A stretch of DNA of 64,000 nucleotides from Dimorphilus gyrociliatus (taxonomy: Eukaryota; Animalia; Annelida): positions 1 through 64,000 of the forward strand of contig CAJFCJ010000051.1 in assembly GCA_904063045.1 (NCBI GenBank), in the 5' to 3' direction. Both the position numbers and the translations under genes were made by a program. This document shows, in pieces, positions 32,292-64,000 of this stretch. The notes beneath the pieces are model-generated. The model was not told the origin of the DNA. It did not search any database and saw only the letters and a program-made list of their open reading frames with translations. The stretch's first letter is position 1, and every line of letters starts with the position of its first letter.

Positions 32292-32431
32292 CCACTCACA
32301 CAACTCTGGTAATGTTTTTGGGAACTGGTTAGCTAGTGTTCCAGTGTAATACCTAACTTTTAATCAATGTTAGGTAGGGGTTCTCCTTGGTCAGGATTAT
32401 AGATTTGGGCTCCGGGTTAGGGTTAGGGTTT

Positions 32432-32752
32432 GCAAAGGTTTTAATAAGAGTTGAACTTGACACTATGATCTAAGTCCTGGTAAAAGTTGAGTAGCTTCCA
32501 CCAATTTTCATGAGTTCCAAATGGAATGCAAGAGTGTGGACCTCCTGCACAGGTTTGACAGAGAAAACAATATCCTGGTTCATGATGTAAAAAATTTTTT
32601 GAAAAATATTTTTTGAGTAACTGACCTACCATGGTTTCATCTTCCCCTTTAGCAAAGACTCATCAGGGTCATTTCTGAGTATAGCTTCTCTTACTGCTAT
32701 CTGGAAGGGGAGGCTAGGATCAATTCTATAACTGGATCCCACCTTGCATTTA
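32432..32752 (-). mobile_element. Diverged family II telomeric retroelement 3' end
   Basis: Follows GGGTTAGGGTTAGGG at 32414-32428, aligns with 52452-52775, contains a hammerhead, and is capped by (TTAGGG)4. Confidence 0.8.
32622..32671 (-). ncRNA. Minimal type I hammerhead ribozyme
   Basis: UGACC CUGAUGA GUCUU-UGCUAAAGGGG-AAGAU GAA ACCAUGGU A^GGUCA: intact core, GUA triplet and palindromic stem III. Confidence 0.85.
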
Positions 32753-32754
32753 AT

Positions 32755-32782
32755 TTAGGGTTAGGGTTAGGGTTAGGGTTAG
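32755..32782 (+). repeat. Interstitial telomeric repeat (TTAGGG)4TTAG
   Basis: Read directly; joined to the next family I terminus. Confidence 0.95.
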
Positions 32783-32978
32783 CAAAAGGTTTTTTTTGAC
32801 TAAATCAAAAAAGAGAAACAGAATTCTCACACTTCAAGAGTCCCAATTGTTTTTGGGAAGCAGTCAAAGAAAAAATACACCAAAATTGACATTTAAAACA
32901 ATTTCCAAAAGAAAAGATTTTTTCAAAAAATTTTCAAAAAATTTTTTTCTGAAATTTTTTATTATTTCCTACCTACAC

Positions 32979-33039
32979 GACCTACCGTGGTTTCGTCCCC
33001 CTCTCTCTTAAATTTGTATATCAGGGACTCTTCAGGGTC
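32979..33039 (-). ncRNA. Minimal type I hammerhead ribozyme
   Basis: GACC CUGAAGA GUCCC-loop-GGGAC GAA ACCACGGU A^GGUC: intact CUGANGA/GAA core. Confidence 0.82.
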
Positions 33040-33695
33040 TAATATAAAGGAATGAGTGAGAGGTTTGAGAATCTTAATAAAAAGCTTCTCTCCAGATTTT
33101 TGATTTATTTGTTTGTTGATAAAGATTCTTGTGGGGTAAAATTATAGATAAAAAATAAAAAATACAAAATACCTAATAGTTTAAAGCTTTTAAAATAACA
33201 AGGTATATAGAAGGAAGAATATATGGGCTTAGATAAAATGTGAGATTAAAAGAATAGTAAGTTGAGGGGATATATATCTCCTACCAGTTGGAAATACAGA
33301 AAAAATAAAAAATTGAAGACATAAAAAATGTGGGAAAAAATAAGTTGGGTAAATAAATAGCAACCAGGATTTGAATAACAATAAAAGTTGAAATAAAGGG
33401 TAAACAATAAAAATTGAAAATTCAAAAATTAGAAAATCAAAATTATAAATTAAAATTATGCATTATATTATTGTTTATGGCTAGTAGATGAATTGAGTAT
33501 GTGTACAGGAATTGGTTAATTAATTGAAAATATATAAAAAATAAGTGAGTGTAAATGAATGAAGTGTGCTATGTATGTTGTATTATGTAGAAAGTATGGT
33601 TAATTTAATTTTATGGCTAAAGATTAGAGGATTGTTAATTTGAAAATTATTAAATAATATTGTTTGAAGACTAACCTTTTTTTCTTGTATTGTAT

Positions 33696-34520: not shown

Positions 34521-34837
34521 ATCAGAAATCCTAAATCATCATAATTGAATGTATAATGATTCTTAAGAAAATAGTACAGAATTTCATCATTTGGCTTTAA
34601 CAATAAAACATTATCAACACAACAAACTCCAACAATTTACCAAAAAAGATAGATTAGTTCACTGTCACATGTATAAGAATCTTTATCTTTTTTAAAAAGA
34701 AAGAAAAAGTTTTGAATCTTTTGCTCAAATATTCTAATTTTGAATTGAAAAAAGTCAATCTCATGGAAAAAGTTTTGTTTTAGTCATTGGTTATGGCTTA
34801 TGTATTAGTTCCTGTCATCCCACATTCTCTTTACTGG

Positions 34838-35100
34838 TTGGGGTTTGCAAAAGGTTTTTTTTGACTAAATCAAAAAAGAGAAACAGAATTCTCACACTTC
34901 AAGAGTCCCAATTGTTTTTGGGAAGCAGTCAAAGAAAAAATACACCAAAATTGACATTTAAAACAATTTCCAAAAGAAAAGATTTTTTCAAAAAATTTTC
35001 AAAAAATTTTTTTCTGAAATTTTTTATTATTTCCTACCTACACGACCTACCACGGTTTCGTCCTCCTCTCTATATTCATTACCAAGGACTCATCAGGGTC
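34838..35100 (-). mobile_element. Family I 3' terminus of a probably long element extending rightwards through the repeat array and ORFs
   Basis: GGGGTTTGCAAAAGG terminus near-identical to 32783-32980 up to the hammerhead, after which it diverges. Confidence 0.8.
35044..35100 (-). ncRNA. Minimal type I hammerhead ribozyme
   Basis: GACC CUGAUGA GUCCU-loop-AGGAC GAA ACCGUGGU A^GGUC: intact core. Confidence 0.85.
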
Positions 35101-38029: not shown

Positions 38030-38455
38030 CTAAACCAATTTCTTTTCCAAAAAAACATATTTTATAAATTTAAGAAACATTGTCTGCTCTTTTTTATATT
38101 TGTTTGGGTCGAAATCAATTAAATGAAAGCCACTCCAACCCAAATTATTTTCTATCCTACTTGGAAAATATTTTTTTAAAAAGTAGATATCCTTTGGCAT
38201 ATTAGGTTTTAACTTTAAAAAGTCAACAATTTCAAATTTCAGTTTCTTTGGATATTCTTTCAAAATCACAATAATTTTTTTATCCTTTAAAGGCCACTCA
38301 ACCAGCAAATATGGAAAAGTATTGAATGATAACTTTTTGAATAATAATAATTGAACATTCTTAATATTATTTTTTTGAAAAATTTTTTTAAAATCTGGAA
38401 CTTTAATGTCAGTAAAATAGTCTGATATAATTACAGTTTCTGTACAAAAATCCAT
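38030..38455 (-). CDS. SGNH/GDSL-like (degenerate) module ORF, 'B-'
   Basis: ETVIISDYF...VQLLLFKKLSF...LLVEWPLKDKKIIVIL shares its pattern with four other ORFs in the window. It is in frame with the upstream ORF across one TAA. Confidence 0.55.
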   Translation of the reverse strand: MDFCTETVIISDYFTDIKVPDFKKIFQKNNIKNVQLLLFKKLSFNTFPYLLVEWPLKDKKIIVILKEYPKKLKFEIVDFLKLKPNMPKDIYFLKKYFPSRIENNLGWSGFHLIDFDPNKYKKEQTMFLKFIKYVFLEKKLV

Positions 38456-38518
38456 TGTGGGGCAAAATGTTTTTAAAATTTTTCTTTGTTTCCTTTTTGG
38501 AAAAAATCTTTCAATTTC

Positions 38519-45304: not shown

Positions 45305-45730
45305 ATGGATAATCAATGGGTTATACCCTCTTCAAAATACCACAAAGATGTAGAATATAATATTGCAAATTTAAAACATCAGTTAAATTATATATTTTCA
45401 ACTGACTACAATATAAAATATTCAAAATCCCATATAAACTTGGAAAATCTTTTAACAACACATGTCAACCAATACAGATTGCTTGGTGGCACAACAATTA
45501 AAAAAATGAATGAAGATGAAGAAGGTTTTGAGGATTTGAAAAATGGTATTTCAAAATTAATCAAAATTTCAAAGAAAAGCATGAAAAAATACATTCAAAG
45601 TAATATGGATTTTTCAAAATATGTTCATTTACCAAAATTAATGGAAGTAATTAAGGAAGAAAAAGAATTTAAAGAAATTTTGGACTTGTGTGAAAAAAAT
45701 ATTTATAGAAAAAATAAAAAGTGTCTTTAA
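45305..45730 (+). CDS. Retroelement accessory ORF 'A+' (paralog of 38519-39226)
   Basis: Shares the KHxL..(I/V)F..(L/F)ExL...H...YxLLG motif; PSSKYHKDV resembles PSQYEKDV in ORF 54169. Confidence 0.6.
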   Translation: MDNQWVIPSSKYHKDVEYNIANLKHQLNYIFSTDYNIKYSKSHINLENLLTTHVNQYRLLGGTTIKKMNEDEEGFEDLKNGISKLIKISKKSMKKYIQSNMDFSKYVHLPKLMEVIKEEKEFKEILDLCEKNIYRKNKKCL

Positions 45731-45766: not shown

Positions 45767-46816
45767 GTGAAAAAAGAATTATTAACATTTTATAGAAAAG
45801 TACATAAATTGGAAGAAGAGATTATACCACAACAAGAAAACAATACTACAACAGAAAGAGAAATTGATCAATCAACAAGACCAGTTCCAATAATAGCAAC
45901 AGAAGAAATTCCACAAACATCAACTATTGCAGACAACACTATTGCTACAACACTAAGAAAACAAACTGCAATAACTACAACAAGTGATGAAGAAATTATT
46001 GAAGCTGCAGCCAGAGCAGAAGCAGCAACAACAGCATCAGCAGACACTGGAACAACTCTTCAAATAAGTGATTGTAATGCAGTCAATTATACACAAATGG
46101 ATATTGGTTTATTAGAAGAATTGGGTATTAATTTAGAAATTGGCCAAGAAATTGAGATGGAAGAGATAAATGAAGAAGAAGAAGAAGAAGAAGAAGAAAT
46201 AGTAGATAAATTCTACATTGATTTACAAAAAAAAAATGAAAGAAAAATAGAGGTAGGTAATATGTTGATTGTTCAAAGAACTAATAATATTATTGTAGAC
46301 ACTGGTTCTTTAAATATAATTGATAAAACACAAAAAATATTTCTCAGAAAGGTAAAACCACAATTTACAAATGTTACTGATTATACCATTCTTACAGATC
46401 AATTTATTAAGTTAGGTGATAAAAAATGGGAAAAGGTACAATCTATGATTAAAACAGAAAAAAAAATACAAATATTTTGTATTGAAGATTTAAAAATGGA
46501 TGATTCACTTCCAATTATAACTGGTTGGAAATTAATCACCAGTAATCTTTTTATATATTTAAAGAATATTCCAAAAGACATAGACATAAAAAAAATTGTT
46601 AAGCAGTTACCTTTTTCCAAAAATAATTTGTGTTTTACAAAAAAAACTTTTGACAAAGAAATTTGTCAAAATTTGAAAGTCATGGGATGTAAGTTATTAA
46701 ATCATCCCAATGAAATATTCAAAAAAGAGGAAACTCTTGTTATTAGATTGCTTAAAGAATTAATGTCTGCTGTTAAATGTTATTATGTTGTTCAAAAATA
46801 TTTGCTTTGTTTTTAG
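45767..46816 (+). CDS. Thr-rich/acidic linker plus SGNH-like module ORF 'B+'
   Basis: In frame with ORF A+ across a single TAA (45728-45730); no ATG at the track start (GTG). DYTILTDQF...IQIFCIEDLKMDDSLPIITGWKL...LFIYL; an AATAAA-like signal lies near 46920. Confidence 0.6.
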   Translation: MKKELLTFYRKVHKLEEEIIPQQENNTTTEREIDQSTRPVPIIATEEIPQTSTIADNTIATTLRKQTAITTTSDEEIIEAAARAEAATTASADTGTTLQISDCNAVNYTQMDIGLLEELGINLEIGQEIEMEEINEEEEEEEEEIVDKFYIDLQKKNERKIEVGNMLIVQRTNNIIVDTGSLNIIDKTQKIFLRKVKPQFTNVTDYTILTDQFIKLGDKKWEKVQSMIKTEKKIQIFCIEDLKMDDSLPIITGWKLITSNLFIYLKNIPKDIDIKKIVKQLPFSKNNLCFTKKTFDKEICQNLKVMGCKLLNHPNEIFKKEETLVIRLLKELMSAVKCYYVVQKYLLCF

Positions 46817-48249: not shown

Positions 48250-51176
48250 GGGGGTCATGGAAAACGTCCACAATGGAAAACGTCCACAATGGAAAACGTC
48301 CACAAATTTATGGAAAACGTCCACAGACAATATGGAAAATGTCCACACAAATATGGAAAATGTCCACAGATTAAATGGAAAACGTCCACAAGTAAAATGG
48401 AAAACGTCCACAGCTGAAATAGCAAATGTGCACAACTTTAATAGAAAGAATTTTCTTAACATAAAACCAAAAAAAATATTTACAACAAAGAACTTGAAAA
48501 TTAATTGATAAAGGATTAGTGAGATATCTTAAAAGTATAAGAAAAATATTCATTTTATACCAGTTTTCTTTTCTAGTTATATCTACTTCCTGTTTTTTTA
48601 AGCTGTTTACTTTTGAGGAAAATTCATTGAAACTGCTTTAAAACTGGTGTTATATATGTGTAATAATTGTAAGTATTATTTTTCTTTATTTATCATAATG
48701 TATTATTATTAATTGGCAGGTAAAAAGTAGCGAATTTTGAATTAAATGAATGTTTTAAATGTAGCATTACATCAGGATTCAAAATGGCAGCATGCAAAAG
48801 TTGTAACAAACACTTTTGTGGAAAGGAAAAGCAAATGAAATGTGTACTATGCAAATACATATTCCATGTCAAATGTATTGAAGGTCAGACTCTGTGAATA
48901 ATTTCAGTTTCACATTTTAAATATTACTTTTTAAATAGGAAAATATTGCACTCAATGCAAAGAAATAAACAATAAAGAAGTTATTATACAACTGAATAGA
49001 TGCAAATTCAAAAAAACTCAGCAGAATGAATTGAATGAAAGTAGTGCTATGCAAATGATAATGCCACCATCACAAATTGCACCTCAAGAGGAAGACATTA
49101 ATGACAAATTTACTTCTCCAAAACCATCTGATATTAATTTTTCCTTTCATTTTGGAGTTTATCAAGAGCACAGGATAGCAGATGAAATGGTTAATGATGA
49201 AGAACATATTGCAGATTTTTCTAGTGAATATGCAGTGTCAACAGAAATTCCAGAAACAGTACCTGACTTTTGCAATGAAGTGGAAATTTCAACTGAAAAT
49301 GATCAAGTATTTGAAAAAAGCATGTGTGATGAAATTGAGCCATTCAAAATTCTTGAAAAGGCAAGTGCTAAAGGGAAAAATGTGTTGATACATAATGGAT
49401 ATTGGTATACATTAAAGTGTAATCGTGGTGAAACAACATACTGGACTTGTGGTGTAAGAACAAAGAAGCAAAAGTGCAAAGCTGCAATTACTGAATTGAA
49501 TTACTCCTATACATTATCTAAAGCTGAGCACTTTCACAGTCCTGTTAAAGACATTGAAAATAAACTTATTTTGAAAAAGAATGTCAGGGAGAAAGGCAAA
49601 GTTAATGTTCATCAAAATGGGAGAAGCATTGCAGAGGAAACTCTAATTGAATTCAACAAAAATGAATCTTTACCATCAATAAAATCTTGCATTGAAGTTG
49701 TTAACTATCACAAAAGAAAAAATAGACCAAAAGAGCCTACTGGTTTAAGATTTATTATAAAGCAAATGTTCTTACCAGAAAACTTCTTGAAAGTGGATAT
49801 TTTTGAAAAGCAAACAAGAGTAGTAATATTTGCAACAGACCATCAACTTAATCTTTTACAATCAACAAATATTTGGTTCCTTGATGGAACATTCAAACCT
49901 GCAAATGATCCATTCAAGCAATTATACTCCATTCATGGATTTCTAAAAAAAGATTCAGAATTGAAACAAGTCCCTCTCTTATTTGCATTCTGCTCATCCA
50001 AGAAAAAATCAGCTTATAAAATTATATTCAAGGTAAATAAGATAAATTCAAAATGTATTTCTTTAAATACTGTTAATATTTTATAGGCTGTTTTTAAACT
50101 GACTAATGGATTTCAACCAAAAACTGCCATGCTAGATTTTGAAGAGAGTGCATGGAGAGCTATGAGTGAATTAGCACCTGATGTTAACATAATTGGATGT
50201 CTTTTTCACTGGTGTCAAGCAATTTACAGAAAGATTGGGGTAATGTATAAATAAAAAGTTTTTTATAACTTTTTAATAGTTTTTATTCAATCATTTATTA
50301 ATAATAGGAGCTTGGACATCAATCACAATATAAAAATCGCACAGGAGAATGGTTTGCAATGAGACTACTCCTCTCTCTACCATTTCTACCATCAGATCAC
50401 ATCAAACATCAATTTGAAAGTATAAAAGATTATCTGCAAGAATGTAATGAGTTATCTCAACTGATTTCTTACATTCAAAATACATGGATTGATAGTACAA
50501 TTTGGCCTCCATCAGCTTGGTCATGTTTCAAAAGAGCAATTCGCACAAACAATGATCTGGAAGGCTTCCATCAAAAATTTAACTCATCTTTTGGGAATAG
50601 AACATCATTTTACACAATTGTTCAAAAGTTGAAACATGAAGCAGATCTAATCAATGTGTTTGAAAAGCTTCTATCTGAAAAGAAAATCTGCAGAAATCAG
50701 AGAAAAACTTATAAGCATCTACAAAAAAAAATCTTTGAAGCTTGGGAAAGTTTTGAAAGATCTGAAATGAATGTTTCTCAACTACTGCAACTTTGTTGTT
50801 CAATTTATCATCCATAATGTGTGATTTTTGAAGTTTAAAATGTTAGTTTCTAGCACTGTTTACTTTACTTTTCTTGTAATGTAACATTTTACAATTAGTT
50901 GCTAAATACATTTTCATAAGTTTGATAAGTTCTGGTGTACATAAAAATTTATCAATAACTTTATTTAAATATTCATTTATAATATACATTTACCTAAGAA
51001 TTACACTTTTTCTCTTTTAAAGATATTTGTAGTGGTTGTGGACGTTTTCCATATATTTGTGGACATTTTCCATATTTCTGTGGACGTTTTCCATATTGTC
51101 TGTGGACGTTTTCCATAAATTTGTGGACGTTTTTCATTGTGGACGTTTTCCATTGTGGACGTTTTCCATGACATCC
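48250..51176 (+). mobile_element. Complete Mutator-like (MULE) DNA transposon 2
   Basis: 9-bp TSD AGACTCTAT (48241-48249 and 51177-51185); TIRs of tandem ATGGAAAACGTCCACA units; internal transposase. Confidence 0.93.
48784..50817 (+). CDS. MULE transposase with N-terminal PHD-like finger and FLYWCH domain (4 exons, intact)
   Basis: Exons 48784-48883, 48939-50032, 50087-50239 and 50308-50817 join in frame. CKSC..CVLC..HVKC..CTQC finger, LIHNGYWY...YWTC...C...HFH, and WFLDGTF, LDFE, GCLFHWCQA, RTNNDLEGFH. Confidence 0.92.
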
Positions 51177-52416: not shown

Positions 52417-52450
52417 TTAGGGTTAGGATAGGTTAGGGTTAGGGTTAGGG
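52417..52450 (+). repeat. Interstitial telomeric repeat tract (with more TTAGGG at 52359-52373)
   Basis: ttagggttaggataggttagggttagggttaggg, read directly. Confidence 0.93.
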
Positions 52451-52646
52451 TTTTTGTAATGTTGAACTAGATACTAAGATCTAAGTTCTGATGAAAGTTG
52501 AATAACTTCCACCAAAGTTTCAAGAGATTCCACAATGGTATGGAATGCAAGAGTAAGAACACTCTGTACAAGTAAGACTATCTACAACTGATTGATGAAA
52601 AATGTTCAGTTTATGTTTTAATTTTTTGATGGTTACTAAGAATAGT

Positions 52647-52696
52647 TGACCTACCATGGTTTCGTCTTCCCCTTTTGCAAAGACTCATCAGGGTCA
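52647..52696 (-). ncRNA. Minimal type I hammerhead ribozyme
   Basis: UGACC CUGAUGA GUCUU-UGCAAAAGGGG-AAGAC GAA ACCAUGGU A^GGUCA: perfect core and stems. Confidence 0.92.
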
Positions 52697-53255
52697 TTTC
52701 AGAAGATAGCTTCACTTACACTACCTTGAAGGGGAGGTCAGGACCAATTCTGCAATTGTATCCTGCCTTGCATTCCATTTTTGTCATAAGATTGATGAAT
52801 GTGTATATATTGAATGGAAGAGGGAATGTTTTGTAACTGTATGTCTAATGATGTTTGTGTGTGTTTTTTGTAATGTCAACTTGTGGAAGTTGAATTTTGT
52901 AATCAATGTATGTTTGTTTGCATGAATGAACATATGAGTATTTTTGTGTTTTGTAATAATTTTTGTTTTAATTTTTTTGTAAGCTGGATGATCAGACATA
53001 GAATCCAACTTGTACTGTTCTTCAAACCCCTTGACTCTCCTTACTTCTGATTAGGTTTTTGTAATGTTGAACTAGATACTAAGATCTAAGTTCTGATGAA
53101 AGTTGAATAACTTCCACCAAAGTTTCAAGAGATTCCACAATGGTATGGAATGCAAGAGTAAGAACACTCTGTACAAGCAAGACTATCTACAACTGATTGA
53201 TGAAAAATGTGTGTTCAGTTTTTGTTCTAATTTTTTGATGGTTACTAAGAATAGT

Positions 53256-53305
53256 TGACCTACCATGGTTTCGTCTTCCCCTTTTGCAAAGACTCATCAG
53301 GGTCA
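53256..53305 (-). ncRNA. Minimal type I hammerhead ribozyme (identical to 52647-52696)
   Basis: Same sequence as the copy at 52647-52696. Confidence 0.92.
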
Positions 53306-53672
53306 TTTCAGAAGATAGCTTCACTTACACTACCTTGAAGGGGAGGTCAGGACCAATTCTGCAATTGTATCCTGCCTTGCATTCTATTTTAGTTGGATGA
53401 TTGTGTTTTAGAGGATACATGTTTGTAATTTTAATTTTGGAACAGATTTTTTTCTTTGTACAATGTTTGAGTTATGTAGACTGTATAAAGTAAATTCATA
53501 TTTGTCTGATAAGTCTTATTTCAACAAGGAAGAAATGGCTTTGTTTAATGAATTAATTTTGAATGGATATGGTTTTTACTTGACAAAGAAACAAAAATTA
53601 CTTCAAAGAAACAATATTGTACTTTTCTTTGAACAGATAAATTATAGAAATGTATAACTCACCCTGGTTTTC

Positions 53673-54168: not shown

Positions 54169-55230
54169 TTACTGTTGATTTGAAGCTTGGAGAATTGGTC
54201 TGTTTAATTTCTTTTTTCTTCCAGTTCTACTTTGTTGTTGTTGAAAGACTTCTTTACACTTGACCATAATTTCATTGGTAATCAAGTGTTGAACAATATT
54301 TCTCAAAGAAGACATCTTTCCAGGCAGAACAATACCATGAAAAGGATCTCCTCTTATGATGGTATTAATATCAATAATTTTTGTAAACATGTTGTTCAAG
54401 TTTTCAGATTGTGAGGCTGGTTGTTGATGCAGATCACTTTTTTTGATGTTATATTGCATAAATAATAAGCATTCATTAGTAACTCCAGTGCTTTTATACA
54501 AAGCTTTAAAATTATCATCAGCATCATTAATGGTGTTAAAGGGAATGTGAAGTGCTGTTATATGACTTTTTATTTTCCATTTGGATATAATTTCTTTACA
54601 ATTTTGAAAGGTTAAGCCAGAAATGTTTATAATGAGAACAGTTCCAAAAAAGCTGATGTTTCTTTTAACATCTTCTACCTGAATTAAATCTAAGTCACCC
54701 AAACTTTCATCACTTAAAAGAAGTAAATTAATTTTGTTGGGAAATCCTACAGCTGGTTGTTGTATTTTCATAAGATTGGTAATTTCTTCCTTTCCAAGAT
54801 TCACTCCAATTTCTGTAAAAGATCTTACCATTTCATTAATATTTGAATTGTGTTTTCTATTAATTTTCATGGTATTGTTATATTTTAGAATATCATCAGT
54901 TTCATTAAGTTGTTGTAAAATCAATTCTACCAATTGTTCCTTGTTGATACTATTTGATATGCCTTCTTCATTAAGCCACAATTTTTCATTGCAAAATTTT
55001 TTAAACTTTAACATTTTTTCTACAACATCTTTCTCATATTGACTTGGATCAAAAGTTGGTGGGTGAATTTTATTGTCTCTTTTAAACCTTTGAAGATGAT
55101 TATAAAAAGTTCCAAAATTGAAAAATTGTTCAAAAGAACATTGCAGGAAATGTTCCATTTCAATTGTTTCATTGATGATTATTTGGTCATTTTCTACTCT
55201 TTGAACTTGATTTGGTTGCATGTTTGCCAT
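54169..55230 (-). CDS. Accessory ORF1-like protein: A-like N-terminus fused to a degenerate SGNH/GDSL-like domain
   Basis: 353 aa. QRFKRDNKIHPPTFDPSQYEKDV resembles the A ORFs. LLLLSDESL...VLIINISGLTF...IISKWKI...LHIPFN...GDPFH matches the SGNH block pattern. Confidence 0.7.
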   Translation of the reverse strand: MANMQPNQVQRVENDQIIINETIEMEHFLQCSFEQFFNFGTFYNHLQRFKRDNKIHPPTFDPSQYEKDVVEKMLKFKKFCNEKLWLNEEGISNSINKEQLVELILQQLNETDDILKYNNTMKINRKHNSNINEMVRSFTEIGVNLGKEEITNLMKIQQPAVGFPNKINLLLLSDESLGDLDLIQVEDVKRNISFFGTVLIINISGLTFQNCKEIISKWKIKSHITALHIPFNTINDADDNFKALYKSTGVTNECLLFMQYNIKKSDLHQQPASQSENLNNMFTKIIDINTIIRGDPFHGIVLPGKMSSLRNIVQHLITNEIMVKCKEVFQQQQSRTGRKKKLNRPILQASNQQ

Positions 55231-55397: not shown

Positions 55398-58300
55398 TTA
55401 AATTTTCTTCTTAATCCTACGTCCAGTTCTAATTATTTTCTCCACAGCAGTTGTTGGTTGTAAATCATCTGTTTTATCATCCATCTTTCTTTTTGTGGCA
55501 AACTTTCTTGTTATTGTATCAAATTTAGGTCTTTTCTCTGGTAGAGAAGAAGGAGTAGTAGAGTTAGATGTATTATCAGACACATTTTTTCTTTTGTAAA
55601 AATGTTTGATTGTAGGTGGTACAGCTTTATTCATTGAATCTTGGTATTTTTGTGGTGTTTCCTTATCTGATGAACTCTTTTTATCAAATAAAGATGATAT
55701 ATTGTGTTTTTCCTGTTTAAAGTAAACATTGTTATTAATTAATTTGAAATAACTACTGACATTGTTTGTAAAAGCAAATATCAGGGGAATATTTTTATAT
55801 ACCAAATAATTTTTTCCAAAATTTCTATAAGTTATTGCTATTTTTTTTAATAAGGGTCCAATATCATTTCTATATGGAATAACAAATGGTACTCTTGTAA
55901 AAACTTGACAACTGGTGTATCTGGCTAAACCAAAGGGATAATAAAGAATATGTTTCATATTCAAGTGATAAACATATCTATTAATTTCAACAGTTGATAT
56001 ATCTTTTTCAATTTGTTCATAGGGAAATATTGTTATGTTTAATTGATTTTCTGCAAAATGTTGATGTTGTATAAAGTTTTCAACAAGCTCATCATTTTTT
56101 AATTCTAAATATTTTCTTAATAGAAGGTGTCTTAGTGTTTGGAATATGTTGACTTTGGTATATTGTTCTTGTAAGTGGAAATACATCAATTGTGCACATT
56201 CTTTACATTGTAGAAGAAATATTTTTGAATTTTTTGTTATCAAGTCTATTGAATTTTTCCTATAGAAGAAATTTAATCTAAGAGGGCAGAATATCTTTTC
56301 TCTGGTGTTAAAATATATGTTTAAGTCTTCAGGAATGCAAAGATTCTTATTTCTATTTTCTTCTAAATTGTATTGGTATTTTTCTTTCTTGTATTTTTCT
56401 TCAAGCACTGTATTTATTGCCTTCCGAATTTCTTTTGATGTGTAGCCTTGGTATAAAAGAGGTTTCATTACAGTTTGACAAGTTTGAAAAAAAAGAAATT
56501 GTGAGGAGCTATTGTTAAGAAATCTTTGAAATTGAGATTTTAGCAGTCCTTTAAAAACATGCTTGGGATGAAGAGAACTCTTGTGAAGTTGATGAAAAGT
56601 ATCACATTCTTTAAAGAAAGTCATATAATCAAGTTGATTGTTTGAAAGAAATCTTGTTCCCTTAAAGAGAGTTAAATCTAAGAAATTGATGCAATTATAG
56701 CTGACAGTTTCTTCAAACTTTAAATTTTTCAATATATTATTTGCTTTCTGAAGATACTTGTGAAATTCAGGCACTCCACTTGTCCAAATTAAGAAAATAT
56801 CATCCAAATATCTCTTGTAAAATAGAGGCTTAGGCTTAATATTAAAGAGGTATAATTCTTCAATCCAAGCCATCCATATATTTGCATAGGCTGGAGCATA
56901 ACTTTGACCCATTGCACAACCACTTTTTTGCAAGTAAATATTGTCTATAAATTTAAAGTGATTCTTATGTAAGTTGAATTTGAGAAGTTCAATGAGAAAC
57001 ATGTCAGGCCTCTCCTGGGAAGGATATTTTTCTAAGAAATATTTTATAGCTTTTAGTCCAGTGTAAGTATCAATATTGGTATACATACTTTTAATATCAA
57101 ATGTCACAAGGAGAGAATCATCTGGAATTTTTATTCTATCCAGTTCATCTAAAAGGTGTTGAGAATTGCCAATATATGAAGAATGCAGCATGCTAATTGG
57201 CTTGAGGTAATGAGCTAAATATCTTGATATTTCATAGGATTCTGTTCTTAAATTACTAACAACAGGTCTGCCTTTAGGAATTTTTCCTTTTATTAGCCAT
57301 TGATCTGGTTCTTTATGAATTTTCGGCAAGCCATAAAATATTCTATTTTCAAAAGAATGCTTCCTTGTAGATACAGAATTTAACAAATGTTTATATTCTT
57401 CTTCACATAAACAAACTTTAAATGTTTCAATTAGGTCTTTATAATACTTCACAGATTTTTGTAAAAACTGGTCACCACAAATATTAATATTTGAACTTGT
57501 TGATAATTGACAATATTGTTTATTATTAGAGAGTAATTGATTGCACATGTAGACATAATCTTCGGTGTTTTGTATTACAATACAAGATCCTTTATCTGAT
57601 GGTTTAATTACAATGTTTAAGGATAAAAACTTTGTTAATGACCTGAAGAATTCCTTGTCAAATTTTCTATATTTATTGAAATTGTCTTTAAAAATATTAT
57701 TCTGTATTGCTTTTTTACAACATTTAAAAAATTGCATCATATTATCACAGTCATCATCACTCTCTTCTGTATCATCTTGTTCATCTATGTAAGATATCAC
57801 TTTTTCACATTCCTTTGGTTTCCATTTATTTTTAATAAATCTAAGATTTCCCACTCTTGTTTGACTATTTTGTTTTTTAATAATTGATAGCTTTTTAAAA
57901 AATTTCTCTAAATTGAATAGTGTATATTGTTTCCATTTTGTTGGTTTAACATGTTCATACACAAACTTTAAACCCAATTTTAAAAAATTATTAATATCAT
58001 TAGGAATCTGATATTTGCTTAAATTAACAATGTACTGAGTATTTAATTGTCTATAGAAAGTTAAAAATGCTACCTTGTTGATTGTTGCATCCATTTCACA
58101 GTTTCTCTCATTGGGATGTTTGCTAATTTTGTGTAAAGTTTTCATTACCAAGTCAATAGAAAACTCTTGAGCTTTCTTGGTTAAATGCTTGGATTTGGAG
58201 TTTCCAGTTGGATTTTCCAAATATCCCAATTTTCTCATGTCTGTCAAATCAATAAGAGAGGCTTGATTATTTATAGCCTTTTGAATATCTTTACAGGAAG

Positions 58301-60020
58301 ACAGCAGTTTGGTTCCAAAAGGAATGGCTAGAATTACGTTCTTGCAAGTTCCAAACTTATCTTTTAGTAATGTAGCTACTCCAAGGGTTTGTTTAGAAGA
58401 ATTCAAATTAGCATGTATGAATATATATTGATATTGAATATTCCAATTTGTTAAAATTGGTAAAATATCATCATAATTTAATTGACTGATGTTAATTATT
58501 ATTCCAGTTTTAACACTGTTATATTTTGAAGCTGATAGTGAAATATTCTTTACTGCAACATCCCTAAATGAACTGTCAGAAATCATTAGAAATTCTGCTT
58601 TCATTGGTACATTTGGTGGTAGTAATTTTGAATAATGCTTTGCTTCTTTGTCTGATAAAAAATTCTTTCCACATTCTGCATAGAGATGAATCAATTTTTT
58701 ATCTTTCCTATAATTATTTCTCAGTATCATTCTCCAACCTTTATATTTTCTGATGTGATCTGTTATGCTCAAGACTAGTGAATTTATGCCATCAATAGTA
58801 GTATTAATATTATTTTGGATATTTTCATTAACTTGATCTTCAGATCTCTTCTGTTCCAAAGCTAACCAAAGGTCATCATCAAATAGGTCAAGTTCACTAG
58901 AATCAATTAAGATGTTTGTATTAGTATCTATGGGTGAATATGTTTTTAGAGGTGATTGTAATAGAAGAGATTCATTTCTTTTTTCATCCATAGGTGCTAT
59001 TAAATGATTGCTTTCTTTTTCAACAAATCCAGCTGTTTCCAAATGATCAATGTCAATAAAGTTCATCTTTTCAATTACTGATTGATCATCTTTTGCTTCT
59101 TGAGCCTTCTTACAGATTGAGGTTTCACATTCTGATTCATTAATAATAGATAAAACATCTTCTATGACTTTGCCTTCTAATTTGGTTGATTTTTCTTGGT
59201 GTTCTTTGAGACTTTTCTTGTTATTCCTGATTTGGTCATTAATTATAATATGATTTTTCACAATTACTGGAGTTTCTTGAACAGTCTTGAAATTTTCTTC
59301 TTTCTGGATTATCAGTGTTTCTTCAATTTCTCTATTTGTTTCTTCTTTCTCAATCATTTGTAGATCTTGGATTTCTTTATCACATATCATTTTCTCAGAG
59401 ACTAATTCTTTGTCCAGTTTCTTAATACTTGTGGTAATCTTATTTTTGGTGTCTTGATTTTTCTTATTATTTCCATTGTACTCTCCTTCAGGCATTTCTT
59501 CAGTTTGACCCTTTTTCTTACGGTTGACATTGTTTTTACATCTCATACAGAATGTAAATAATATATCCTTTGTTTTCTGAACAAATTCTTTATCCAATTT
59601 TAAAGATTTTTCTAAGAAGATCTTGGAAATCCATTTCTTGATATCAATCCCATCAAACTGTTTACATAGAATACCAAAAGTAGAACAATAGTTTTCCAAT
59701 ATGAGAAACTCTTCCAGATTTTCCATGTATTTCTTTTCAATTAAATCTTTGAAATTGTTGTAATCTTCCTTCATGGATTCTTGGAAAGGCTTTGTTATAG
59801 CAAACCTATTTGTAAAGTATAAAGAGTCTGATAAACTGCAGATTTTTTTAAAAGGAACTCTGGTATGTTTTTCAATATGTTTGTCAATGACAAATTTAAG
59901 TTGTTTATACATATCATATTTTGCTGTATTTAAATTGAGTTTGAAACATTCCTTTTCCTCAAAGATGTCTGGGTAAAACCATGGATAGAGTTGTTGCTTT
60001 GCTTTCTTTTTTTTTTCCAT
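55398..60020 (-). CDS. Penelope-like element reverse transcriptase with N-terminal SGNH-like domain and degenerate C-terminal GIY-YIG
   Basis: Uninterrupted ORF (ATG at 60020). PLE motifs: IVNLS..LKLGLKF, IKPSDKG, FYGLPKIHK, RPVVS, TFDIKSMYTNI, GCAMGQSYAPAYANIWM, YKRYLDDIFLIW, INFLDL and LHKSSLHP..SQFQR. EN remnant: KIFLLQCKECAQLMYFH...YPFGL. Confidence 0.93.
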   Translation of the reverse strand: MEKKKKAKQQLYPWFYPDIFEEKECFKLNLNTAKYDMYKQLKFVIDKHIEKHTRVPFKKICSLSDSLYFTNRFAITKPFQESMKEDYNNFKDLIEKKYMENLEEFLILENYCSTFGILCKQFDGIDIKKWISKIFLEKSLKLDKEFVQKTKDILFTFCMRCKNNVNRKKKGQTEEMPEGEYNGNNKKNQDTKNKITTSIKKLDKELVSEKMICDKEIQDLQMIEKEETNREIEETLIIQKEENFKTVQETPVIVKNHIIINDQIRNNKKSLKEHQEKSTKLEGKVIEDVLSIINESECETSICKKAQEAKDDQSVIEKMNFIDIDHLETAGFVEKESNHLIAPMDEKRNESLLLQSPLKTYSPIDTNTNILIDSSELDLFDDDLWLALEQKRSEDQVNENIQNNINTTIDGINSLVLSITDHIRKYKGWRMILRNNYRKDKKLIHLYAECGKNFLSDKEAKHYSKLLPPNVPMKAEFLMISDSSFRDVAVKNISLSASKYNSVKTGIIINISQLNYDDILPILTNWNIQYQYIFIHANLNSSKQTLGVATLLKDKFGTCKNVILAIPFGTKLLSSCKDIQKAINNQASLIDLTDMRKLGYLENPTGNSKSKHLTKKAQEFSIDLVMKTLHKISKHPNERNCEMDATINKVAFLTFYRQLNTQYIVNLSKYQIPNDINNFLKLGLKFVYEHVKPTKWKQYTLFNLEKFFKKLSIIKKQNSQTRVGNLRFIKNKWKPKECEKVISYIDEQDDTEESDDDCDNMMQFFKCCKKAIQNNIFKDNFNKYRKFDKEFFRSLTKFLSLNIVIKPSDKGSCIVIQNTEDYVYMCNQLLSNNKQYCQLSTSSNINICGDQFLQKSVKYYKDLIETFKVCLCEEEYKHLLNSVSTRKHSFENRIFYGLPKIHKEPDQWLIKGKIPKGRPVVSNLRTESYEISRYLAHYLKPISMLHSSYIGNSQHLLDELDRIKIPDDSLLVTFDIKSMYTNIDTYTGLKAIKYFLEKYPSQERPDMFLIELLKFNLHKNHFKFIDNIYLQKSGCAMGQSYAPAYANIWMAWIEELYLFNIKPKPLFYKRYLDDIFLIWTSGVPEFHKYLQKANNILKNLKFEETVSYNCINFLDLTLFKGTRFLSNNQLDYMTFFKECDTFHQLHKSSLHPKHVFKGLLKSQFQRFLNNSSSQFLFFQTCQTVMKPLLYQGYTSKEIRKAINTVLEEKYKKEKYQYNLEENRNKNLCIPEDLNIYFNTREKIFCPLRLNFFYRKNSIDLITKNSKIFLLQCKECAQLMYFHLQEQYTKVNIFQTLRHLLLRKYLELKNDELVENFIQHQHFAENQLNITIFPYEQIEKDISTVEINRYVYHLNMKHILYYPFGLARYTSCQVFTRVPFVIPYRNDIGPLLKKIAITYRNFGKNYLVYKNIPLIFAFTNNVSSYFKLINNNVYFKQEKHNISSLFDKKSSSDKETPQKYQDSMNKAVPPTIKHFYKRKNVSDNTSNSTTPSSLPEKRPKFDTITRKFATKRKMDDKTDDLQPTTAVEKIIRTGRRIKKKI

Positions 60021-63000
60021 CACAACTTGTTATTCTTTCTTAAACAAATAACAAAAAAGAAACAAAACGTAAACTTTTATTTAATTAGCCTGTTACAAGT
60101 GTGACACATCCATTTGAGATACTTTTCTGAATAAATAAATTTCAGATTATCCTACTATTTATAAACAGAGTGACGTTCTAATTAAAAACACACTGGTCAT
60201 TTATTAAAAGGCACTCCTTCAAAAGATGAACTGTAGGGAAATTGATAACCTTAATGGTGAACTTTTTTCCTTACAATCTAACGTTGAAATAAAAAAAGAA
60301 AAATATTTGTATTTTACATTAATATAGAATGCCTGAAAAGGGCTCCAGAAAAATATCTCATTGCATTTATTACAAAGAATCAATTAAAACTGATAAAATT
60401 CATAGCCTAATGGCTGTCAATTTTATCTAGAAACAGAAAACTCTTCTAAACAATTTATAAAGTACTTACAATACTTCTGGAATATTCTTTTAGATGTATA
60501 GTTGATGGTAGAATTATTTGAGCAGCAAATACAATACTTCTGATGAGATCCTATTTAGATTTTTTAATATTGAGTTTTTTTACAAAAAAATTATCTTTTT
60601 TACTAATATTCTATTTACCTTTCTTTTAAGTAGATTGATTCTTCAAATGCACTTTTGATGAAAATATGCTGAAAAAATGGTAAGTTTAAAAAGAATTTTG
60701 TTTAAAGGGAAAGGTAGACAATAAATCAAGTAGAAAATCCTTGAAAAAAATTGATACATACATCAGAGTGTAGTCAAGAGACAATCCTTCCTCTATGGTG
60801 ACGAATGGTAGAATGCCTATAACATAGGTTTATATACTCTTTGGAGAAAAGACCCCCATGTCAGAAAAGACCCTTGATAAACTGTTATCAAAACATATCA
60901 CTTTCCAACACAATTTCACATTACATAACAGGAGATAAAGATTTTCTTATCAAAAACTGACAGGGAACCTGAAAAACCCTGATGGCTATATACAAATGCT
61001 AATACTTTATTTACAAAAGAAAAAGAAAGAAGTTATGTAAAAAAAATTGTTAATTTTGACCTGAATTTAGTAAAATATTTCTGACAGACAACTTTGATAA
61101 TTATCATAAAACTAAAAATTATGTGTATTGCACTTTCTAATTGTTTAATTAGTTTTAATTAGAAACTAAAGAATTTCCACAATTTGTTTTTGACATTTGA
61201 TTGAAAAGCTATATCTCTTGACAGTTAAATCTCAAAATGTTAAAAATATTTAAATTTATATGAAATATAATAATGTATACACAACTTTACCTAAATTTTT
61301 ACTTTCATAGTTGAAATTCTTGTAATAAATAGTACTATATCAAATTCTTAAGATATAACTTTCAAGTCAAATAGGTTTTCTCTAATTCTTTTGCATTTAA
61401 ACTGTCAATATGTGTAAAATTTATTAAAATCTATGATAGCAAAAAGGACTTTGTTACCATTATCTAGTCATAAACATTACATATAAGGCTACCCTAAGCT
61501 AACGTTTTCAACCTTGAGAACAATAATTTTTAATAGAAGTAAATTTTGGAAAAAAACGGAGGTAAGGTAAAGTTCAGAATGGAACAGCTGGGAATTGAAG
61601 TCAATTGGAAACAACAAAACCATAGACCATCTGGCCAACTTATAGCATCTGGATGAGAAATTGGAGGAGCAAAGAAAAAGCCAAGAGAAAAAACATATTG
61701 TAAACATTAAGGCTGCCCAAGAAATCTTTCCCATCTATGTTAAAACCCTAGATTTTATCTATGACACTATTAATTTTAATGATTATTGGAATTTATTCTA
61801 TTTTTCTATTTCATTTTCAGCCTTTGATCTGTACTGGTAGGAATAGCTATAAGACTGCCTTTTCAAGCTGAACTAGAACAACCTGGAGCAGTCATACAGA
61901 GAGATCAACTATATAACAGTTGTTTCTGTGCACTAATAATTTTCTTCCTTGTTATACTCTTTAAAATTGAAGGCTTTGGTAACTGAATATTACCTAAAAT
62001 ATTTGGAGCACCTGATGTATATTGGATCCAGTAATTTTGTACCAAAATTTGTAATAACCAACTTTGATGAAGAGAGGCAGACTAAAAATTTTTTACATTT
62101 TACTTTGTTGTTGTTTTATTTGTTTTGAACAAAATTTAAAGAATTTAAATTGTTTTCTTTACTTAACTTCTTGAATTGCTCTTTTTCTTGTAAGTTAAAT
62201 TTTTCAATGATAATAATGTGCAAATTTTTTTTAATTATAATAATGTTTATTCAAATTTTTGTAACTTATCAATTTCATAATTAAAATTCTTTTAATAAAC
62301 TGAAATATATCTGATTTTTAAGATTTAACTTACAAGAGAAATATGTTAATTTTAATTATTTTACATTTAGCTGAAAAATGAGCACAAACTTTTGTATAAA
62401 CTATTAACTCAATCTGAACTGCACTTGCCAAAAAAATGAGAAGAGTTGTTCTTTGGATAAAACATATTATTATATTCCTATAGTATTGTCAATTGAAAGA
62501 AAGGATAGATTATTGTCACTATAGATGATCTAGGCAAACCTACAACAATAACACCAACCAATTTTATAAGATTGTCTAAGATACCAATTAGTGATAGGAA
62601 ATACAACTAGTAAATCTCTTTCTTTTCCAGATGTTGGTGTAATTGCCAATTGTGACTAAACTTGAGAGTTTAGCACTGTCATTTTATTTTTATGTTAATT
62701 CTGCTGTTCCTGAAGTTGGAATTGTTAAAAATTTGAACTTTACTTCTTTTTGTCATCTTTCAATTCTTTCGTTTTATATTATTTAAAATTATTGTCAAGA
62801 AAATTGAAAAATTATATATGCTAATAATCTAATAATAACTTTTAATAGTTTTGAGTAGAAGTACAGGTTTTAACGAACCCTTTGAAGCTTAAAGCCTAGG
62901 GTAATATATTTGAAGTTAAGTGTAATGTCTGTGTTATTTTTTTTGGGAAGCCATTACATTGGCACCTGACACACATAGCAAGTAGAATAATATACAAAGA

Positions 63001-63107
63001 TTGAAAAAGATATAAAAGGGTTTTAAATATAGATTGTAATGTTGGATTAGTAACACTGCATAATTATAATCAAGAACTGTTAATGCAAAAAAATTAGAAT
63101 GACAAAT

Positions 63108-64000
63108 CTATATTTCACTAAAAAAGTGTCTAAGTAGGTGATTTTGTTGTTGTTTTTCAGGAAGTTCATTAAATCCACCGTTTTTGGTTAGCAACTTATT
63201 TTGTAGTTGCTCAGGAATTGTAATAAAGTTTAATCCAGCTTTTTTCATATTTCTTTCAGTGTATGTTGTAAAATAATGGCTAGGAAAAACCATTTTCTCT
63301 AATTTTATAGGCTGAGTAATAATTTTACTGGAGGATGTTAAGGCCTTGCTTTTGGTGTAAAAGAAAATTCTTTTGAATGATAACTTCCATTTTAAACATA
63401 TCTCAATAATATCCATAAACTTTAATTCTTTAATCTTAATGAATAGTACATTTGGTGCATTTCCAACTGTTTTATCCTTTATCTGGAATATTTCATTTCC
63501 TGAAACCTTATCAAAAGAATTATCAGTTATTAGTATATAATCAAAATCTTCTTTCCTAAATTCTTTCTTAAATGCTTGGTCAATTTTGACATTTGTCCTC
63601 TTTAGGTAAGTAAAGCTGTTTAGCCGTAAAACATTCTCAGTCTTCTTTTCTTTGTTCATTCTTTGCTCTTGTACCTTCTCTTTCTCTTTCAATTCTGATT
63701 TTTGATGATGCGTTATACTTTGTGCGTTTCCTGTGTTTAAGTGTTGATCTTGTTGATGCTCCTGTGGTTCAGTTCTTCTCTCAATAACTGGTGCCTTTTT
63801 TCCTCCATTTAGCTCTTGCTGATTTGCCATTTCTGGTTTTTCTTTGGACTCTTGATGGCATGTTCTTTTTTCCAGTCTAGCTTTCTTTCTCTTTGGTTCT
63901 TCTAATTCATTTGTTAAGTCATATGCAATAACTTTATCCTTCATGGCTGCCTTTTCTCTTTTTTTCGATATTCTTGGAATAATTGTTTGAGTACATTCAT
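63108..64000 (-). CDS. Accessory ORF with charged linker and degenerate SGNH-like module (open at the window edge)
   Basis: The frame stays open upstream of the ATG at 63944 to the window end. DYILITDNSF...VLFIKIKELKFMDIIEICLKWKL..RIFFY. Confidence 0.65.
   Translation of the reverse strand, partial: ECTQTIIPRISKKREKAAMKDKVIAYDLTNELEEPKRKKARLEKRTCHQESKEKPEMANQQELNGGKKAPVIERRTEPQEHQQDQHLNTGNAQSITHHQKSELKEKEKVQEQRMNKEKKTENVLRLNSFTYLKRTNVKIDQAFKKEFRKEDFDYILITDNSFDKVSGNEIFQIKDKTVGNAPNVLFIKIKELKFMDIIEICLKWKLSFKRIFFYTKSKALTSSSKIITQPIKLEKMVFPSHYFTTYTERNMKKAGLNFITIPEQLQNKLLTKNGGFNELPEKQQQNHLLRHFFSEI

Follow-up and report, generated by a model that had tools for sequence, protein, structure and literature searches.

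The reverse transcriptases (RTs) of Penelope-like elements (PLEs) are the sister group of telomerase RTs. PLEs of the Neptune/Nematis type carry an endonuclease (EN) and combine an RT that has DKG and YLDD motifs with a C-terminal GIY-YIG domain, two Cys residues between GIY and YIG, and hammerhead motifs in the terminal repeats (Arkhipova 2006; PMC8557442). Canonical EN+ PLEs share an internal CCHH finger with a Cys pair (Craig et al. 2021, PMC8557442). The element described here lies in a 64-kb window (the whole stretch of DNA analysed, 64,000 nucleotides from the annelid Dimorphilus gyrociliatus), and it has the same RT motifs, a C-terminal domain derived from GIY-YIG with its two Cys residues and hammerhead motifs in terminal repeats. 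Unlike the Neptune/Nematis type, it has its catalytic residues replaced and lacks the CX2-5CxxC linker; in its CCHH finger Asn takes the place of the first His, and a new His precedes the second one by two residues. An N-terminal extension of about 660 aa that includes an SGNH-like domain precedes the RT region. In addition, no pseudo-LTR (pLTR) pair was found around the open reading frame (ORF), direct repeats occurring only downstream (52449-53403) with no copy in 60024-64000, and the 3′ end carries the telomere complement.

Athena elements and Terminons are EN-deficient, telomere-associated PLEs of bdelloid rotifers (Arkhipova et al. 2017, in PMC6431247). They are described as having a 3′ hammerhead module followed by reverse-complement telomeric repeats and as forming co-oriented stacked units with short telomeric tracts between them, and the window shows both arrangements. 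Terminons also carry accessory GDSL/SGNH-like ORFs, of which some have no catalytic residues (PMC5408684), as does the window, and the likeness extends to the multi-ORF unit, here possibly longer than 11 kb. The EN domain, however, is wholly missing from Athena, whereas the window element keeps a conserved EN-derived domain that is predicted to be dead. Its RT groups with live-EN PLEs in a tree of retrieved PLEs built without named Athena reference sequences, its repeat is TTAGGG, unlike the bdelloid repeat, and its closest relative is from an annelid, whereas Athena and Terminons have rotifer hosts. The telomere complement also lies about 205 nt past the ribozyme, and not directly downstream as PMC6431247 reports for Terminons. 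Secondary EN loss within EN+ clades, as seen here, is represented by MjPLE01 (Neptune-like, from kuruma shrimp) and Chlamys PLE-X; PMC8557442 postulates another 3′-OH source for them, as we do here, and describes them as having no EN, whereas the window element keeps a conserved domain minus its active site. We conclude that the window element represents a lineage that arose from live-EN PLEs, has an inactivated EN and bears a Terminon-like 3′ end (Table 1).

Table 1. Features of the PLE locus and of the ribozyme modules, in window positions.
Feature	Position	Strand	Basis or remark
Intact PLE ORF, 1541 codons; order: N-terminal domain (aa 1-170), E/K-rich stretch (171-415), SGNH-like domain, PLE N-terminal DKG region, RT, thumb, predicted dead GIY-YIG, tail, basic C-terminus	55398..60023	-	open frame
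SGNH/GDSL-hydrolase-like domain, aa ~440-660, fused upstream of RT	58044..58706	-	AF2 + Foldseek
PLE N-terminal (DKG) region, RT core with YLDD and thumb, aa 661-1215	56379..58043	-	
GIY-YIG/CCHH module, predicted catalytically dead, aa 1253-1371	55911..56267	-	hhalign, alignment, AF2
Post-EN tail ('VPFVIPY...')	55704..55910	-	homologous to C-terminal tail of closest live-EN PLEs
Lys/Arg/Ser-rich C-terminal extension, aa 1441-1541	55401..55703	-	window copy only
Downstream co-oriented ORF, 353 aa, paralogous SGNH-like domain without the Ser/Asn/His positions	54169..55230	-	
Upstream co-oriented ORF, 278 aa, paralogous SGNH-like domain	63108..63944	-	
Internal ~345-bp 3′ module, hammerhead core 53268-53300, CCTAA remnant at end	53054..53403	-	
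Terminal ~345-bp 3′ module, hammerhead core 52659-52691, runs straight into telomeric tract	52449..52794	-	
(TTAGGG)~6, equal to (CCCTAA)n at 3′ end of minus-strand element	52417..52452	+	
Solo module 32436-32758, hammerhead core 32634-32666, telomeric repeats on either side	within 32417..33100	-	
Second-family terminal module, hammerhead core 32990-33035, ends in (CCCTAA)4 at 32755-32778	within 32417..33100	-	
Second-family internal module, hammerhead core 35055-35096, degenerate telomere-like unit at end	34830..35100	-	

A preliminary description of this DNA had reported an RT with YLDD intact over about 1540 codons. This is borne out by the open frame and the preserved RT motifs, and the peptides that it quoted are all present in the ORF translation. 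The ORF had 41 PLE RT homologues (best E 5e-137), PLE RTs being its closest relatives, and the DKG, PKIHK, motif A Asp, motif B and YLDD motifs were invariant across three family members. Neither the whole ORF nor four pieces of it gave an RVT_1, GIY-YIG or esterase match when scanned with a Pfam set without PF26215 and PF28514, both of which are precomputed for relatives, and a PDB sequence search with the ORF gave no match. The 5′ end of the RT unit extends past the window edge.

A search of 1.84 billion representative proteins yielded only two close relatives, P0001 and P0002; one comes from Dimorphilus gyrociliatus and the other from a Logan run. When the retrieved PLEs were placed in a tree, the three members formed a 100% clade with a long stem inside the live-EN group, and both RT tree and profile point to nearest relatives that have the CX2-5CxxC linker and a live GIY-YIG domain. 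The dead-EN state appears to derive from live-EN PLEs in which the RT is followed by Zn-linker, GIY-YIG and tail. In metagenome scans, the dead-domain profile retrieved no member of the family, and the full alignment retrieved nothing closer than distant PLE RTs (≤39% identity). In the Dimorphilus relative the 3′ end of the element falls in a 3.2-kb assembly gap of record CAJFCJ010000101.1, and its readable flanks contained no ribozyme and no telomeric repeat. Telomere priming was considered from one RT-bearing copy.

The GIY-YIG-derived domain that had been placed at 55900-56300 coincides with the module delimited here. Comparison of the family with the 22 nearest live-EN PLEs by hhalign gave a probability of 98% (E 2.5e-13, 164 colinear columns), as opposed to only 18% with more distant live ENs. 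An AF2 model of the domain (pLDDT 71.8, from an input alignment made up mostly of live ENs) had the GIY-YIG secondary-structure order, beta-beta-alpha-alpha-beta-alpha, and its top Foldseek matches in the PDB, weak ones (E 0.38), were 1mk0 and 1ln0, the catalytic domain of I-TevI, the GIY-YIG prototype. The order of strands and helices is the same in both, whereas a sequence-level match to I-TevI is lacking, the catalytic Tyr, Arg, Glu and Asn are missing from the window domain, and a Cys pair absent from I-TevI is inserted. Neither the dead-domain profile against PDB sequences nor a word search limited to aa 1245-1440 found a match. A live-EN profile, which finds I-TevI at E 1e-6, gave no match at E≤10 when run against all frames of the window, and we therefore rejected an N-terminal GIY-YIG of the Naiad/Chlamys type in the ORF.

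To follow the active site we aligned the three members with the 22 live-EN relatives, and residue states are given in the order window copy/P0001/P0002. Residues found in 22/22 live relatives were altered as follows: the GIY Tyr to F1269/F/C, the YIG Tyr to M1280/M/M, the catalytic Arg to N/D/P, a His to T/H/I, the His of 'HF' to N/N/N, the Glu to I/I/L and the Asn of GLN to A/A/A. The YIG Gly reads F/A/G by fixed CxxC spacing and H/A/G in the alignment, where MAFFT placed a gap in the window copy. Across the three members, only two residues escape the replacement of the live-clade invariants (Y, Y, G, T, R, H, H, E and N): P0001 retains the His at column 89, and P0002 retains the YIG Gly. For the catalytic Glu, hhalign found no counterpart. 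The GIY Tyr, YIG Tyr, Arg, Glu and Asn of an active enzyme are therefore absent from every member. The preliminary description had read the GIY and YIG motifs as replaced and had seen no clear catalytic Arg or Glu; the proper alignment by which it said it could be refuted restored none of these residues. Judged from sequence, the module probably has no nicking activity.

Loss of the active site was not accompanied by erosion of the domain. The window copy keeps C1273, C1276, H1320, H1322, F1333-P1334 and P1363-x-G1365-L1366, and the CxxC, HxH, FP and PxGL are invariant in all three members, including the terminal PxGL that had been recognised before. Within the CCHH finger the CxxC is invariant, the first His is Asn in all three members and an invariant HxH follows at +4 and +6. 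We reject the earlier reading of the CxxC as a Neptune-type linker: it is the internal pair of the CCHH finger, and the true CX2-5CxxC linker, upstream of GIY in live relatives, is missing in the window copy, P0001 and P0002. The Cys2-His2 set may bind zinc. Since dS was saturated (at least 1.7), the dN/dS ratio was unusable and we took per-domain identity and dN instead. Identity in the domain was 41%, equal to that of the PLE N-terminal domain and above the linker (22%) and the tail (25%), and dN was 0.55. The substitutions are common to three deeply diverged members, so the term fossilising does not apply, and by these measures the domain is a stable pseudo-nuclease maintained by selection, not a decaying relic. 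The accompanying suggestion that it is retained for structure or nucleic-acid binding fits the conservation and the invariant Cys/His set.

The SGNH-like domain was modeled from only five sequences (pLDDT 74, pTM 0.75), and the predicted model has the SGNH (flavodoxin-like) fold. Foldseek matched it in the PDB to TesA, PAF-AH, OatA and GDSL lipases, with probabilities of 0.97-1.0 and target-normalised TM-scores of 0.5-0.67; Pfam gave no match for the domain, nor did a word search with its alignment. Ser, Asn and His occupy the expected SGNH places in the window copy and P0001 and are missing in P0002 and the two stand-alone ORFs, and the Asp three residues before the His is missing. The 278-aa ORF may belong to the unit of the RT gene.

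Both hammerhead cores downstream of the RT gene consist of CUGAUGAG, helix II and CGAAAC, with helix I formed by UGACC/GGUCA and helix III by the palindrome CCAUGG; they are type I hammerheads with a short palindromic helix III, in terminal repeats. The exact core was observed three times against 0 expected, each time on the minus strand, and a looser pattern added two more cores. In the named hammerhead structure 97.6% of cells pair, as against 29-62% in slid controls, with one compensatory pair. The hammerheads were detected by sequence reading and pattern search and were not called by Rfam, either at the gathering threshold in the whole window or at E≤1 in 50-64 kb. MFE z-scores of the ribozyme segments were not significant, which is to be expected if, as is believed, this minimal motif functions as a dimer. 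At three independent junctions a hammerhead core is followed by ~205-212 nt and then by (CCCTAA)n. Telomeric 12-mers (≤1 mismatch) matched ten times against 0.1 expected, and all telomeric tracts are on the plus strand, all modules on the minus strand.

The preliminary description had proposed a shift from nicking-based insertion to telomere-end priming. The telomeric link is independently backed by the downstream hammerhead modules ending in (CCCTAA)n, whose orientation fits priming on a TTAGGG overhang. The conserved dead EN together with the downstream ribozyme and telomere repeats suggests priming on chromosome ends and not DNA cutting. We hold it somewhat probable that this is a Penelope-like lineage of live-EN ancestry with a dead, retained GIY-YIG domain and a ribozyme 3′ end that primes on telomeric ends. 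The GIY-YIG domain would have lost its catalytic residues and upstream Zn-linker and kept its beta-beta-alpha-alpha-beta-alpha scaffold and Cys2-His2 set, and the retained non-catalytic module may bind nucleic acid or position the primer. The 3′-OH for reverse transcription would most likely come from G-rich telomeric ends or from breaks healed with telomeric repeats. The element RNA would end in the hammerhead module and then (CCCUAA)n, pairing with the (TTAGGG)n 3′ overhang, a pairing model that follows the one for Athena elements and Terminons in PMC6431247. A more far-reaching version, which we offer tentatively and think rather unlikely, is an independent, non-rotifer origin of Terminon-like giant PLEs from a nicking live-EN ancestor, in which the EN was repurposed: stripped of its active site but with the Zn-binding scaffold kept, it would now keep either the telomeric G-overhang or the 3′ RNA module in place on the RT.

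Chromosome-end priming by this element supposes that the RT ORF and the 3′ modules belong together, which is probably the case. They could be separate elements because 2.0 kb lie between the end of the ORF and the first module downstream, and the ~345-bp module could be an independent non-autonomous element because a complete solo copy lies between telomeric tracts. We consider it unlikely that the modules are independent, retrozyme-like non-autonomous elements that lie beside the RT ORF by chance, and that this ORF is a gene that is immobile or domesticated. In favor of this reading, the module is a discrete unit with fixed ends and also occurs as a solo copy, and no homology links the spacer between the two ~345-bp modules to the sequence that precedes the internal one; the protein search found only three family members, and the long stem branch fits a change of selective regime. 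On the other hand, PLE ribozymes normally sit in the element's own terminal repeats (PMC4209133), and here a single strand carries the RT ORF, the SGNH-like ORF on either side of it and every one of the five ribozyme cores. The layout is moreover repeated by a second, unrelated module family downstream of an SGNH-like ORF at 38030-38455.

Another possibility is that the EN-defective element inserts by nicking at interstitial telomeric repeats, using a nuclease in trans, for example from live-EN PLEs elsewhere in the genome, or an uncharacterised activity of its own. The N-terminal 170 aa of the ORF have no assigned function. Telomere-repeat-specific non-LTR elements do target telomeric repeats. 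The junctions all have short tracts of 2-6 units inside the 64-kb window, with no terminal array, and live-EN PLEs show a microsatellite target bias (PMC8557442). However, the window encodes no live GIY-YIG, and the uniform orientation and head-to-tail stacking are what end-addition predicts. Internal module copies already carry 1-2 templated telomere-complement units at their 3′ ends, and base-pairing is therefore favored over site-specific cleavage. We regard insertion by nicking as quite unlikely. That the domain is still a nuclease through non-canonical residues is very improbable: the fold and Cys/His ligands are kept, and the window copy alone has Tyr1281 (one residue off the YIG register), Arg1298 and Glu1346 close to catalytic positions, from one to a few residues away, but these are out of register and not conserved in P0001 or P0002, and in 3/3 members a hydrophobic residue stands at the Glu position and Ala at that of Asn.

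To our knowledge, the telomere-associated PLEs described so far lack the endonuclease altogether, and EN loss within EN+ clades has been mentioned only in passing. The lineage described here shows an EN domain long outliving its own active site, beside a 3′ structure of ribozyme and telomere complement, and bears on the open question of how retroelements switch between cleavage of internal DNA and priming at chromosome ends. The dead domain is a concrete protein with which binding of G-rich ends, zinc and ribozyme RNA can be tested. Terminon-like organisation would extend to an animal with TTAGGG-type repeats and, if the repurposing of the EN is true, the family would be a living lineage whose conserved architecture is transitional between EN+ retrotransposons and telomerase-like end-priming.

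The main open reading frame (ORF) of the Penelope-like element (PLE) runs for 1541 codons without interruption in surrounding DNA of ~28% G+C. When residues 850-1400 served as the query in a word-index search, all 41 proteins matched were PLE reverse transcriptases (RTs), many with a Pfam GIY-YIG domain. Two of them share the full architecture of the window protein, including its N-terminal extension and unusual C-terminal module: P0001 from Dimorphilus gyrociliatus (DgyrCDS14925; 46% identity) and P0002 from Logan run ERR14224706 (41% identity). When a profile of residues 1130-1440 was run with HMMER exhaustively over 1.84 billion representative proteins, these two alone scored below 1e-30, and the next tier (~85 bits, whole profile matched) held PLEs ordered RT, CX2-5CxxC linker, live GIY-YIG, ~70-aa tail. 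A quick-search tree of 84 PLE RTs, rooted only at the midpoint, joined the three family members with 100% support on a long stem, nested among elements with a live endonuclease (EN). The RT is intact, as the preliminary description had it: DKG, PKIHK, the motif A Asp, motif B and YLDD are invariant in all three.

Residues 1-170 are also conserved in all three members and matched no family or structure. The deposited DgyrCDS14925 model (1212 aa) stops early; the genomic ORF runs on in frame (13484-13960 of its locus L001, record CAJFCJ010000101.1) and encodes a homologue of the PLE post-EN tail before it reaches 3.2 kb of N. Among live-EN PLEs, a ~70-aa module ('IPxxxxY ... RNKNL..LV.SK') follows the GIY-YIG in some and precedes the Zn-linker and EN in others, with both orders inside one RT clade (P0042-P0047 and P0004 versus P0007, P0012 and P0005). 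This is a domain-order permutation, of which we found no mention in the PLE literature consulted.

Every peptide quoted in the preliminary description was found in the translation, and the region it marked corresponds to residues 1253-1371. Comparison of the family by hhalign with distant canonical PLE ENs gave a colinear match at a probability of just 18% (E 0.0013), and comparison with the 22 closest live-EN relatives gave 98% (E 2.5e-13) over 164 colinear columns spanning the EN core and tail. The canonical PLE EN profile reaches I-TevI at E 1e-6; the window-family profile matched no solved structure. An AlphaFold2 model (pLDDT 71.8), built on an alignment dominated by live ENs, has the order strand-strand-helix-helix-strand-helix, and the I-TevI catalytic domain accounts for its best two PDB matches, at weak scores (E 0.38, target-normalised TM-score 0.48). 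Together, the hhalign matches, profile searches, model and PDB matches make descent from a GIY-YIG EN well supported.

The R, H, E and N of the EN have been named as catalytic (Craig et al. 2021, PMC8557442). We aligned 25 sequences, the 22 live-EN relatives and the three family members, and found that every catalysis-linked position that does not vary among the live relatives is replaced in the family, with two exceptions: P0001 retains the His at column 89, and P0002 retains the YIG Gly. The earlier reading that the GIY and YIG motifs and the catalytic Arg and Glu are missing holds, as the alignment restores no Tyr, Arg or Glu in register; the Glu also has no counterpart in the hhalign alignment. 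Judged from these residues, the domain probably lacks nuclease activity.

Residues of the family at positions conserved in live-EN relatives
Live relatives	Window copy	P0001	P0002
GIY Tyr	F1269	F	C
YIG Tyr	M1280	M	M
YIG Gly (placed by spacing from CxxC)	F1282	A	G
Arg	N	D	P
His following Arg	T	H	I
His of 'HF'	N	N	N
Glu	I	I	L
Asn of GLN	A	A	A

Invariant in the family are C1273, C1276, H1320, H1322, F-P and P-x-G-L. The CxxC and PxGL reported earlier are therefore present, but the label of a Neptune-type linker was wrong: the two Cys form the internal half of the CCHH finger characteristic of canonical EN+ PLEs, and the upstream CX2-5CxxC linker (Neptune/Nematis-type) of the live relatives is absent from the family. 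All three members have Asn in place of the first canonical His, and a new His lies two residues ahead of the second, which could be a ligand swap keeping a Cys2His2 site; on sequence grounds the domain may bind zinc.

The dN/dS check proposed for this domain was run by comparing codons between the window copy and the Dimorphilus locus, and synonymous sites are saturated (dN 0.55, dS at least 1.7 for the dead EN), so the ratio is not meaningful. Amino acid identity between the two is 57% in both RT core and thumb, 42% in the PLE N-terminal (DKG) region, 41% in the dead EN, 35% in the SGNH-like domain, 25% in the tail and 22% in the linker. The domain had been called fossilising; it is not decaying, and its substitutions are common to all three members. 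Because this clade also lies inside the live-EN group, we conclude that inactivation is old and derived and that the domain has been kept ever since. The term pseudo-nuclease fits better.

Residues ~440-660 had no match in Pfam. Their AlphaFold2 model (pLDDT 74, pTM 0.75), built from just five sequences, matched SGNH/GDSL hydrolases in the PDB (TesA, PAF-AH, OatA and GDSL lipases; probability 0.97-1.0, target-normalised TM-score 0.5-0.67). Stand-alone SGNH-like paralogues lie on the same strand on either side of the main ORF, with two weaker relatives farther off, and the domain family is abundant within a 30-kb block of the window. Read from the alignment, Ser, Asn and His at the expected SGNH blocks are kept in the window copy and P0001, and not in P0002 or the stand-alone ORFs. 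Athena elements and Terminons are known to carry GDSL-type ORFs, some of which lack catalytic residues, and esterases are known from fish and mollusc Neptune-like PLEs (PMC5408684).

Features of the window
Feature	Position	Strand	Remarks
Ank-SOCS gene	4094-5878		host-like
LRR-GPCR gene	24820-26076		host-like
Degenerate telomeric tracts	~26.98, 47.65, 52.37 kb
Composition shift	~30000		G+C 32-43% left, 23-34% right
(CCCTAA)n junction ends	52452, 32428, 32778
Solo module, complete	32436-32758		between two telomeric tracts
Second module family	32779-39472	-
Its terminal core	32990-33035		module ends in (CCCTAA)4
Its internal core	35055-35096		~2.07 kb upstream
ORF	38030-38455	-	SGNH-like, weaker
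ORF	38519-39472		no match
FLYWCH gene, first copy	42481-44358	+
ORF	45305-45730		precedes next ORF
349-aa ORF	45767-46816	+	SGNH-like, weaker; blastp E 5e-4 to aa 446-537
FLYWCH gene, second copy with flanking arrays	48257-51169
Inverted 16/22-bp repeat arrays	48257-48434, 51036-51169		flank second copy
(CCCTAA)~6, i.e. (TTAGGG)n	52417-52452	+	after modules
Two ~345-bp modules	53054-53403, 52449-52794	-	260 bp apart
Non-coding DNA	between modules and next ORF	-	765 bp
353-aa ORF	54169-55230	-	SGNH-like; first feature downstream of main ORF
Main ORF	55398-60023	-
Dead EN	55911-56267	-	aa 1253-1371
Residues 1-170	59514-60023	-
~340-bp direct repeat	61064-61399, 62033-62369		70% identity, ~970 bp apart
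SGNH-like ORF	63108-63944	-	upstream of main ORF

Each module 3' of the main ORF carries a hammerhead core (CUGAUGAG, helix II, CGAAAC) with helix I UGACC/GGUCA, a short palindromic helix III (CCAUGG) and the cleavage triplet GUA. A search of the window for the exact core pattern gave three matches where 0 were expected, each on the minus strand, and a looser pattern added two cores. In the named structure 97.6% of cells pair, versus 29-62% with slid partners, and helix II has one compensatory change; Rfam models did not match. These hammerheads resemble the type I ribozymes with short palindromic helix III of metazoan PLEs, which are thought to work as dimers (PMC4209133).

Alignment of five modules resolved two families with one layout. 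At three junctions (CCCTAA)n follows the ribozyme core by ~205-212 nt, and two internal copies end in just 1-2 telomere-like units, indicating that the template itself includes a short telomere complement. All ten telomeric 12-mers (up to one mismatch) are on the plus strand, against 0.1 expected. The G-rich plus strand reads telomeric repeat, antisense element 3' end, element body and next telomeric repeat, as expected of reverse transcription with a G-rich overhang as primer.

The second module family is unrelated to the main one and has its layout, with nearly identical internal and terminal modules. No RT was found in its stretch, perhaps a Terminon-like unit that is truncated or non-autonomous. 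The window is animal DNA by its ankyrin-SOCS-box, LRR-GPCR and FLYWCH ORFs, with no sign of a human origin. Right of the composition shift lies a transposon-rich block with telomeric tracts, and the change fits a subtelomeric or internalised-telomere boundary. The direct repeat, which sits in 3 kb of non-coding DNA upstream of the main ORF, does not resemble the ribozyme modules. The FLYWCH-containing gene, which we take to resemble a MULE-type transposase, has two diverged copies (40-49% aa identity, two ORFs each), and the second looks like a DNA transposon inserted in a retroelement array.

We lean towards a model in which the family arose from live-EN PLEs and would have abandoned nicking. 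The (CCCUAA)n tail of the element RNA would meet a telomeric or telomere-healed 3' end, from which the RT would prime, and the dead EN would stay, its Cys/His scaffold included, as a binding or positioning module. The RT ORF and modules probably form one unit, as judged from one RT-bearing copy; the readable flanks of the Dimorphilus copy hold no ribozyme or telomeric repeat, and its 3' end falls in an assembly gap. That the modules are independent non-autonomous elements beside an immobile or domesticated RT gene appears unlikely to us, and a nuclease acting in trans, aimed at interstitial telomeric repeats, slightly less likely still. Activity of the dead EN through a non-canonical site is very improbable, because Tyr1281, one residue off register in the window copy, and the Arg and Glu close by are conserved in neither P0001 nor P0002.

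A hammerhead ahead of a short reverse-complement telomeric stretch, and head-to-tail arrays of copies with short telomeric tracts in between, have been reported for Athena elements and Terminons (PMC6431247); the window modules are arranged alike. Unlike the EN-minus PLEs Athena and Coprina, which have no EN domain at all, the window element retains a dead one. It belongs neither to the active GIY-YIG nucleases nor to the Neptune-type linker group, nor to Athena as defined by EN absence: it would work like the EN-minus Athena type and descends from EN+ PLEs. What is new is that a conserved GIY-YIG/CCHH module is retained although catalytically dead, that it occurs together with an SGNH-like fusion and a Terminon-like 3' end, and that there are relatives in an annelid with TTAGGG-type repeats.
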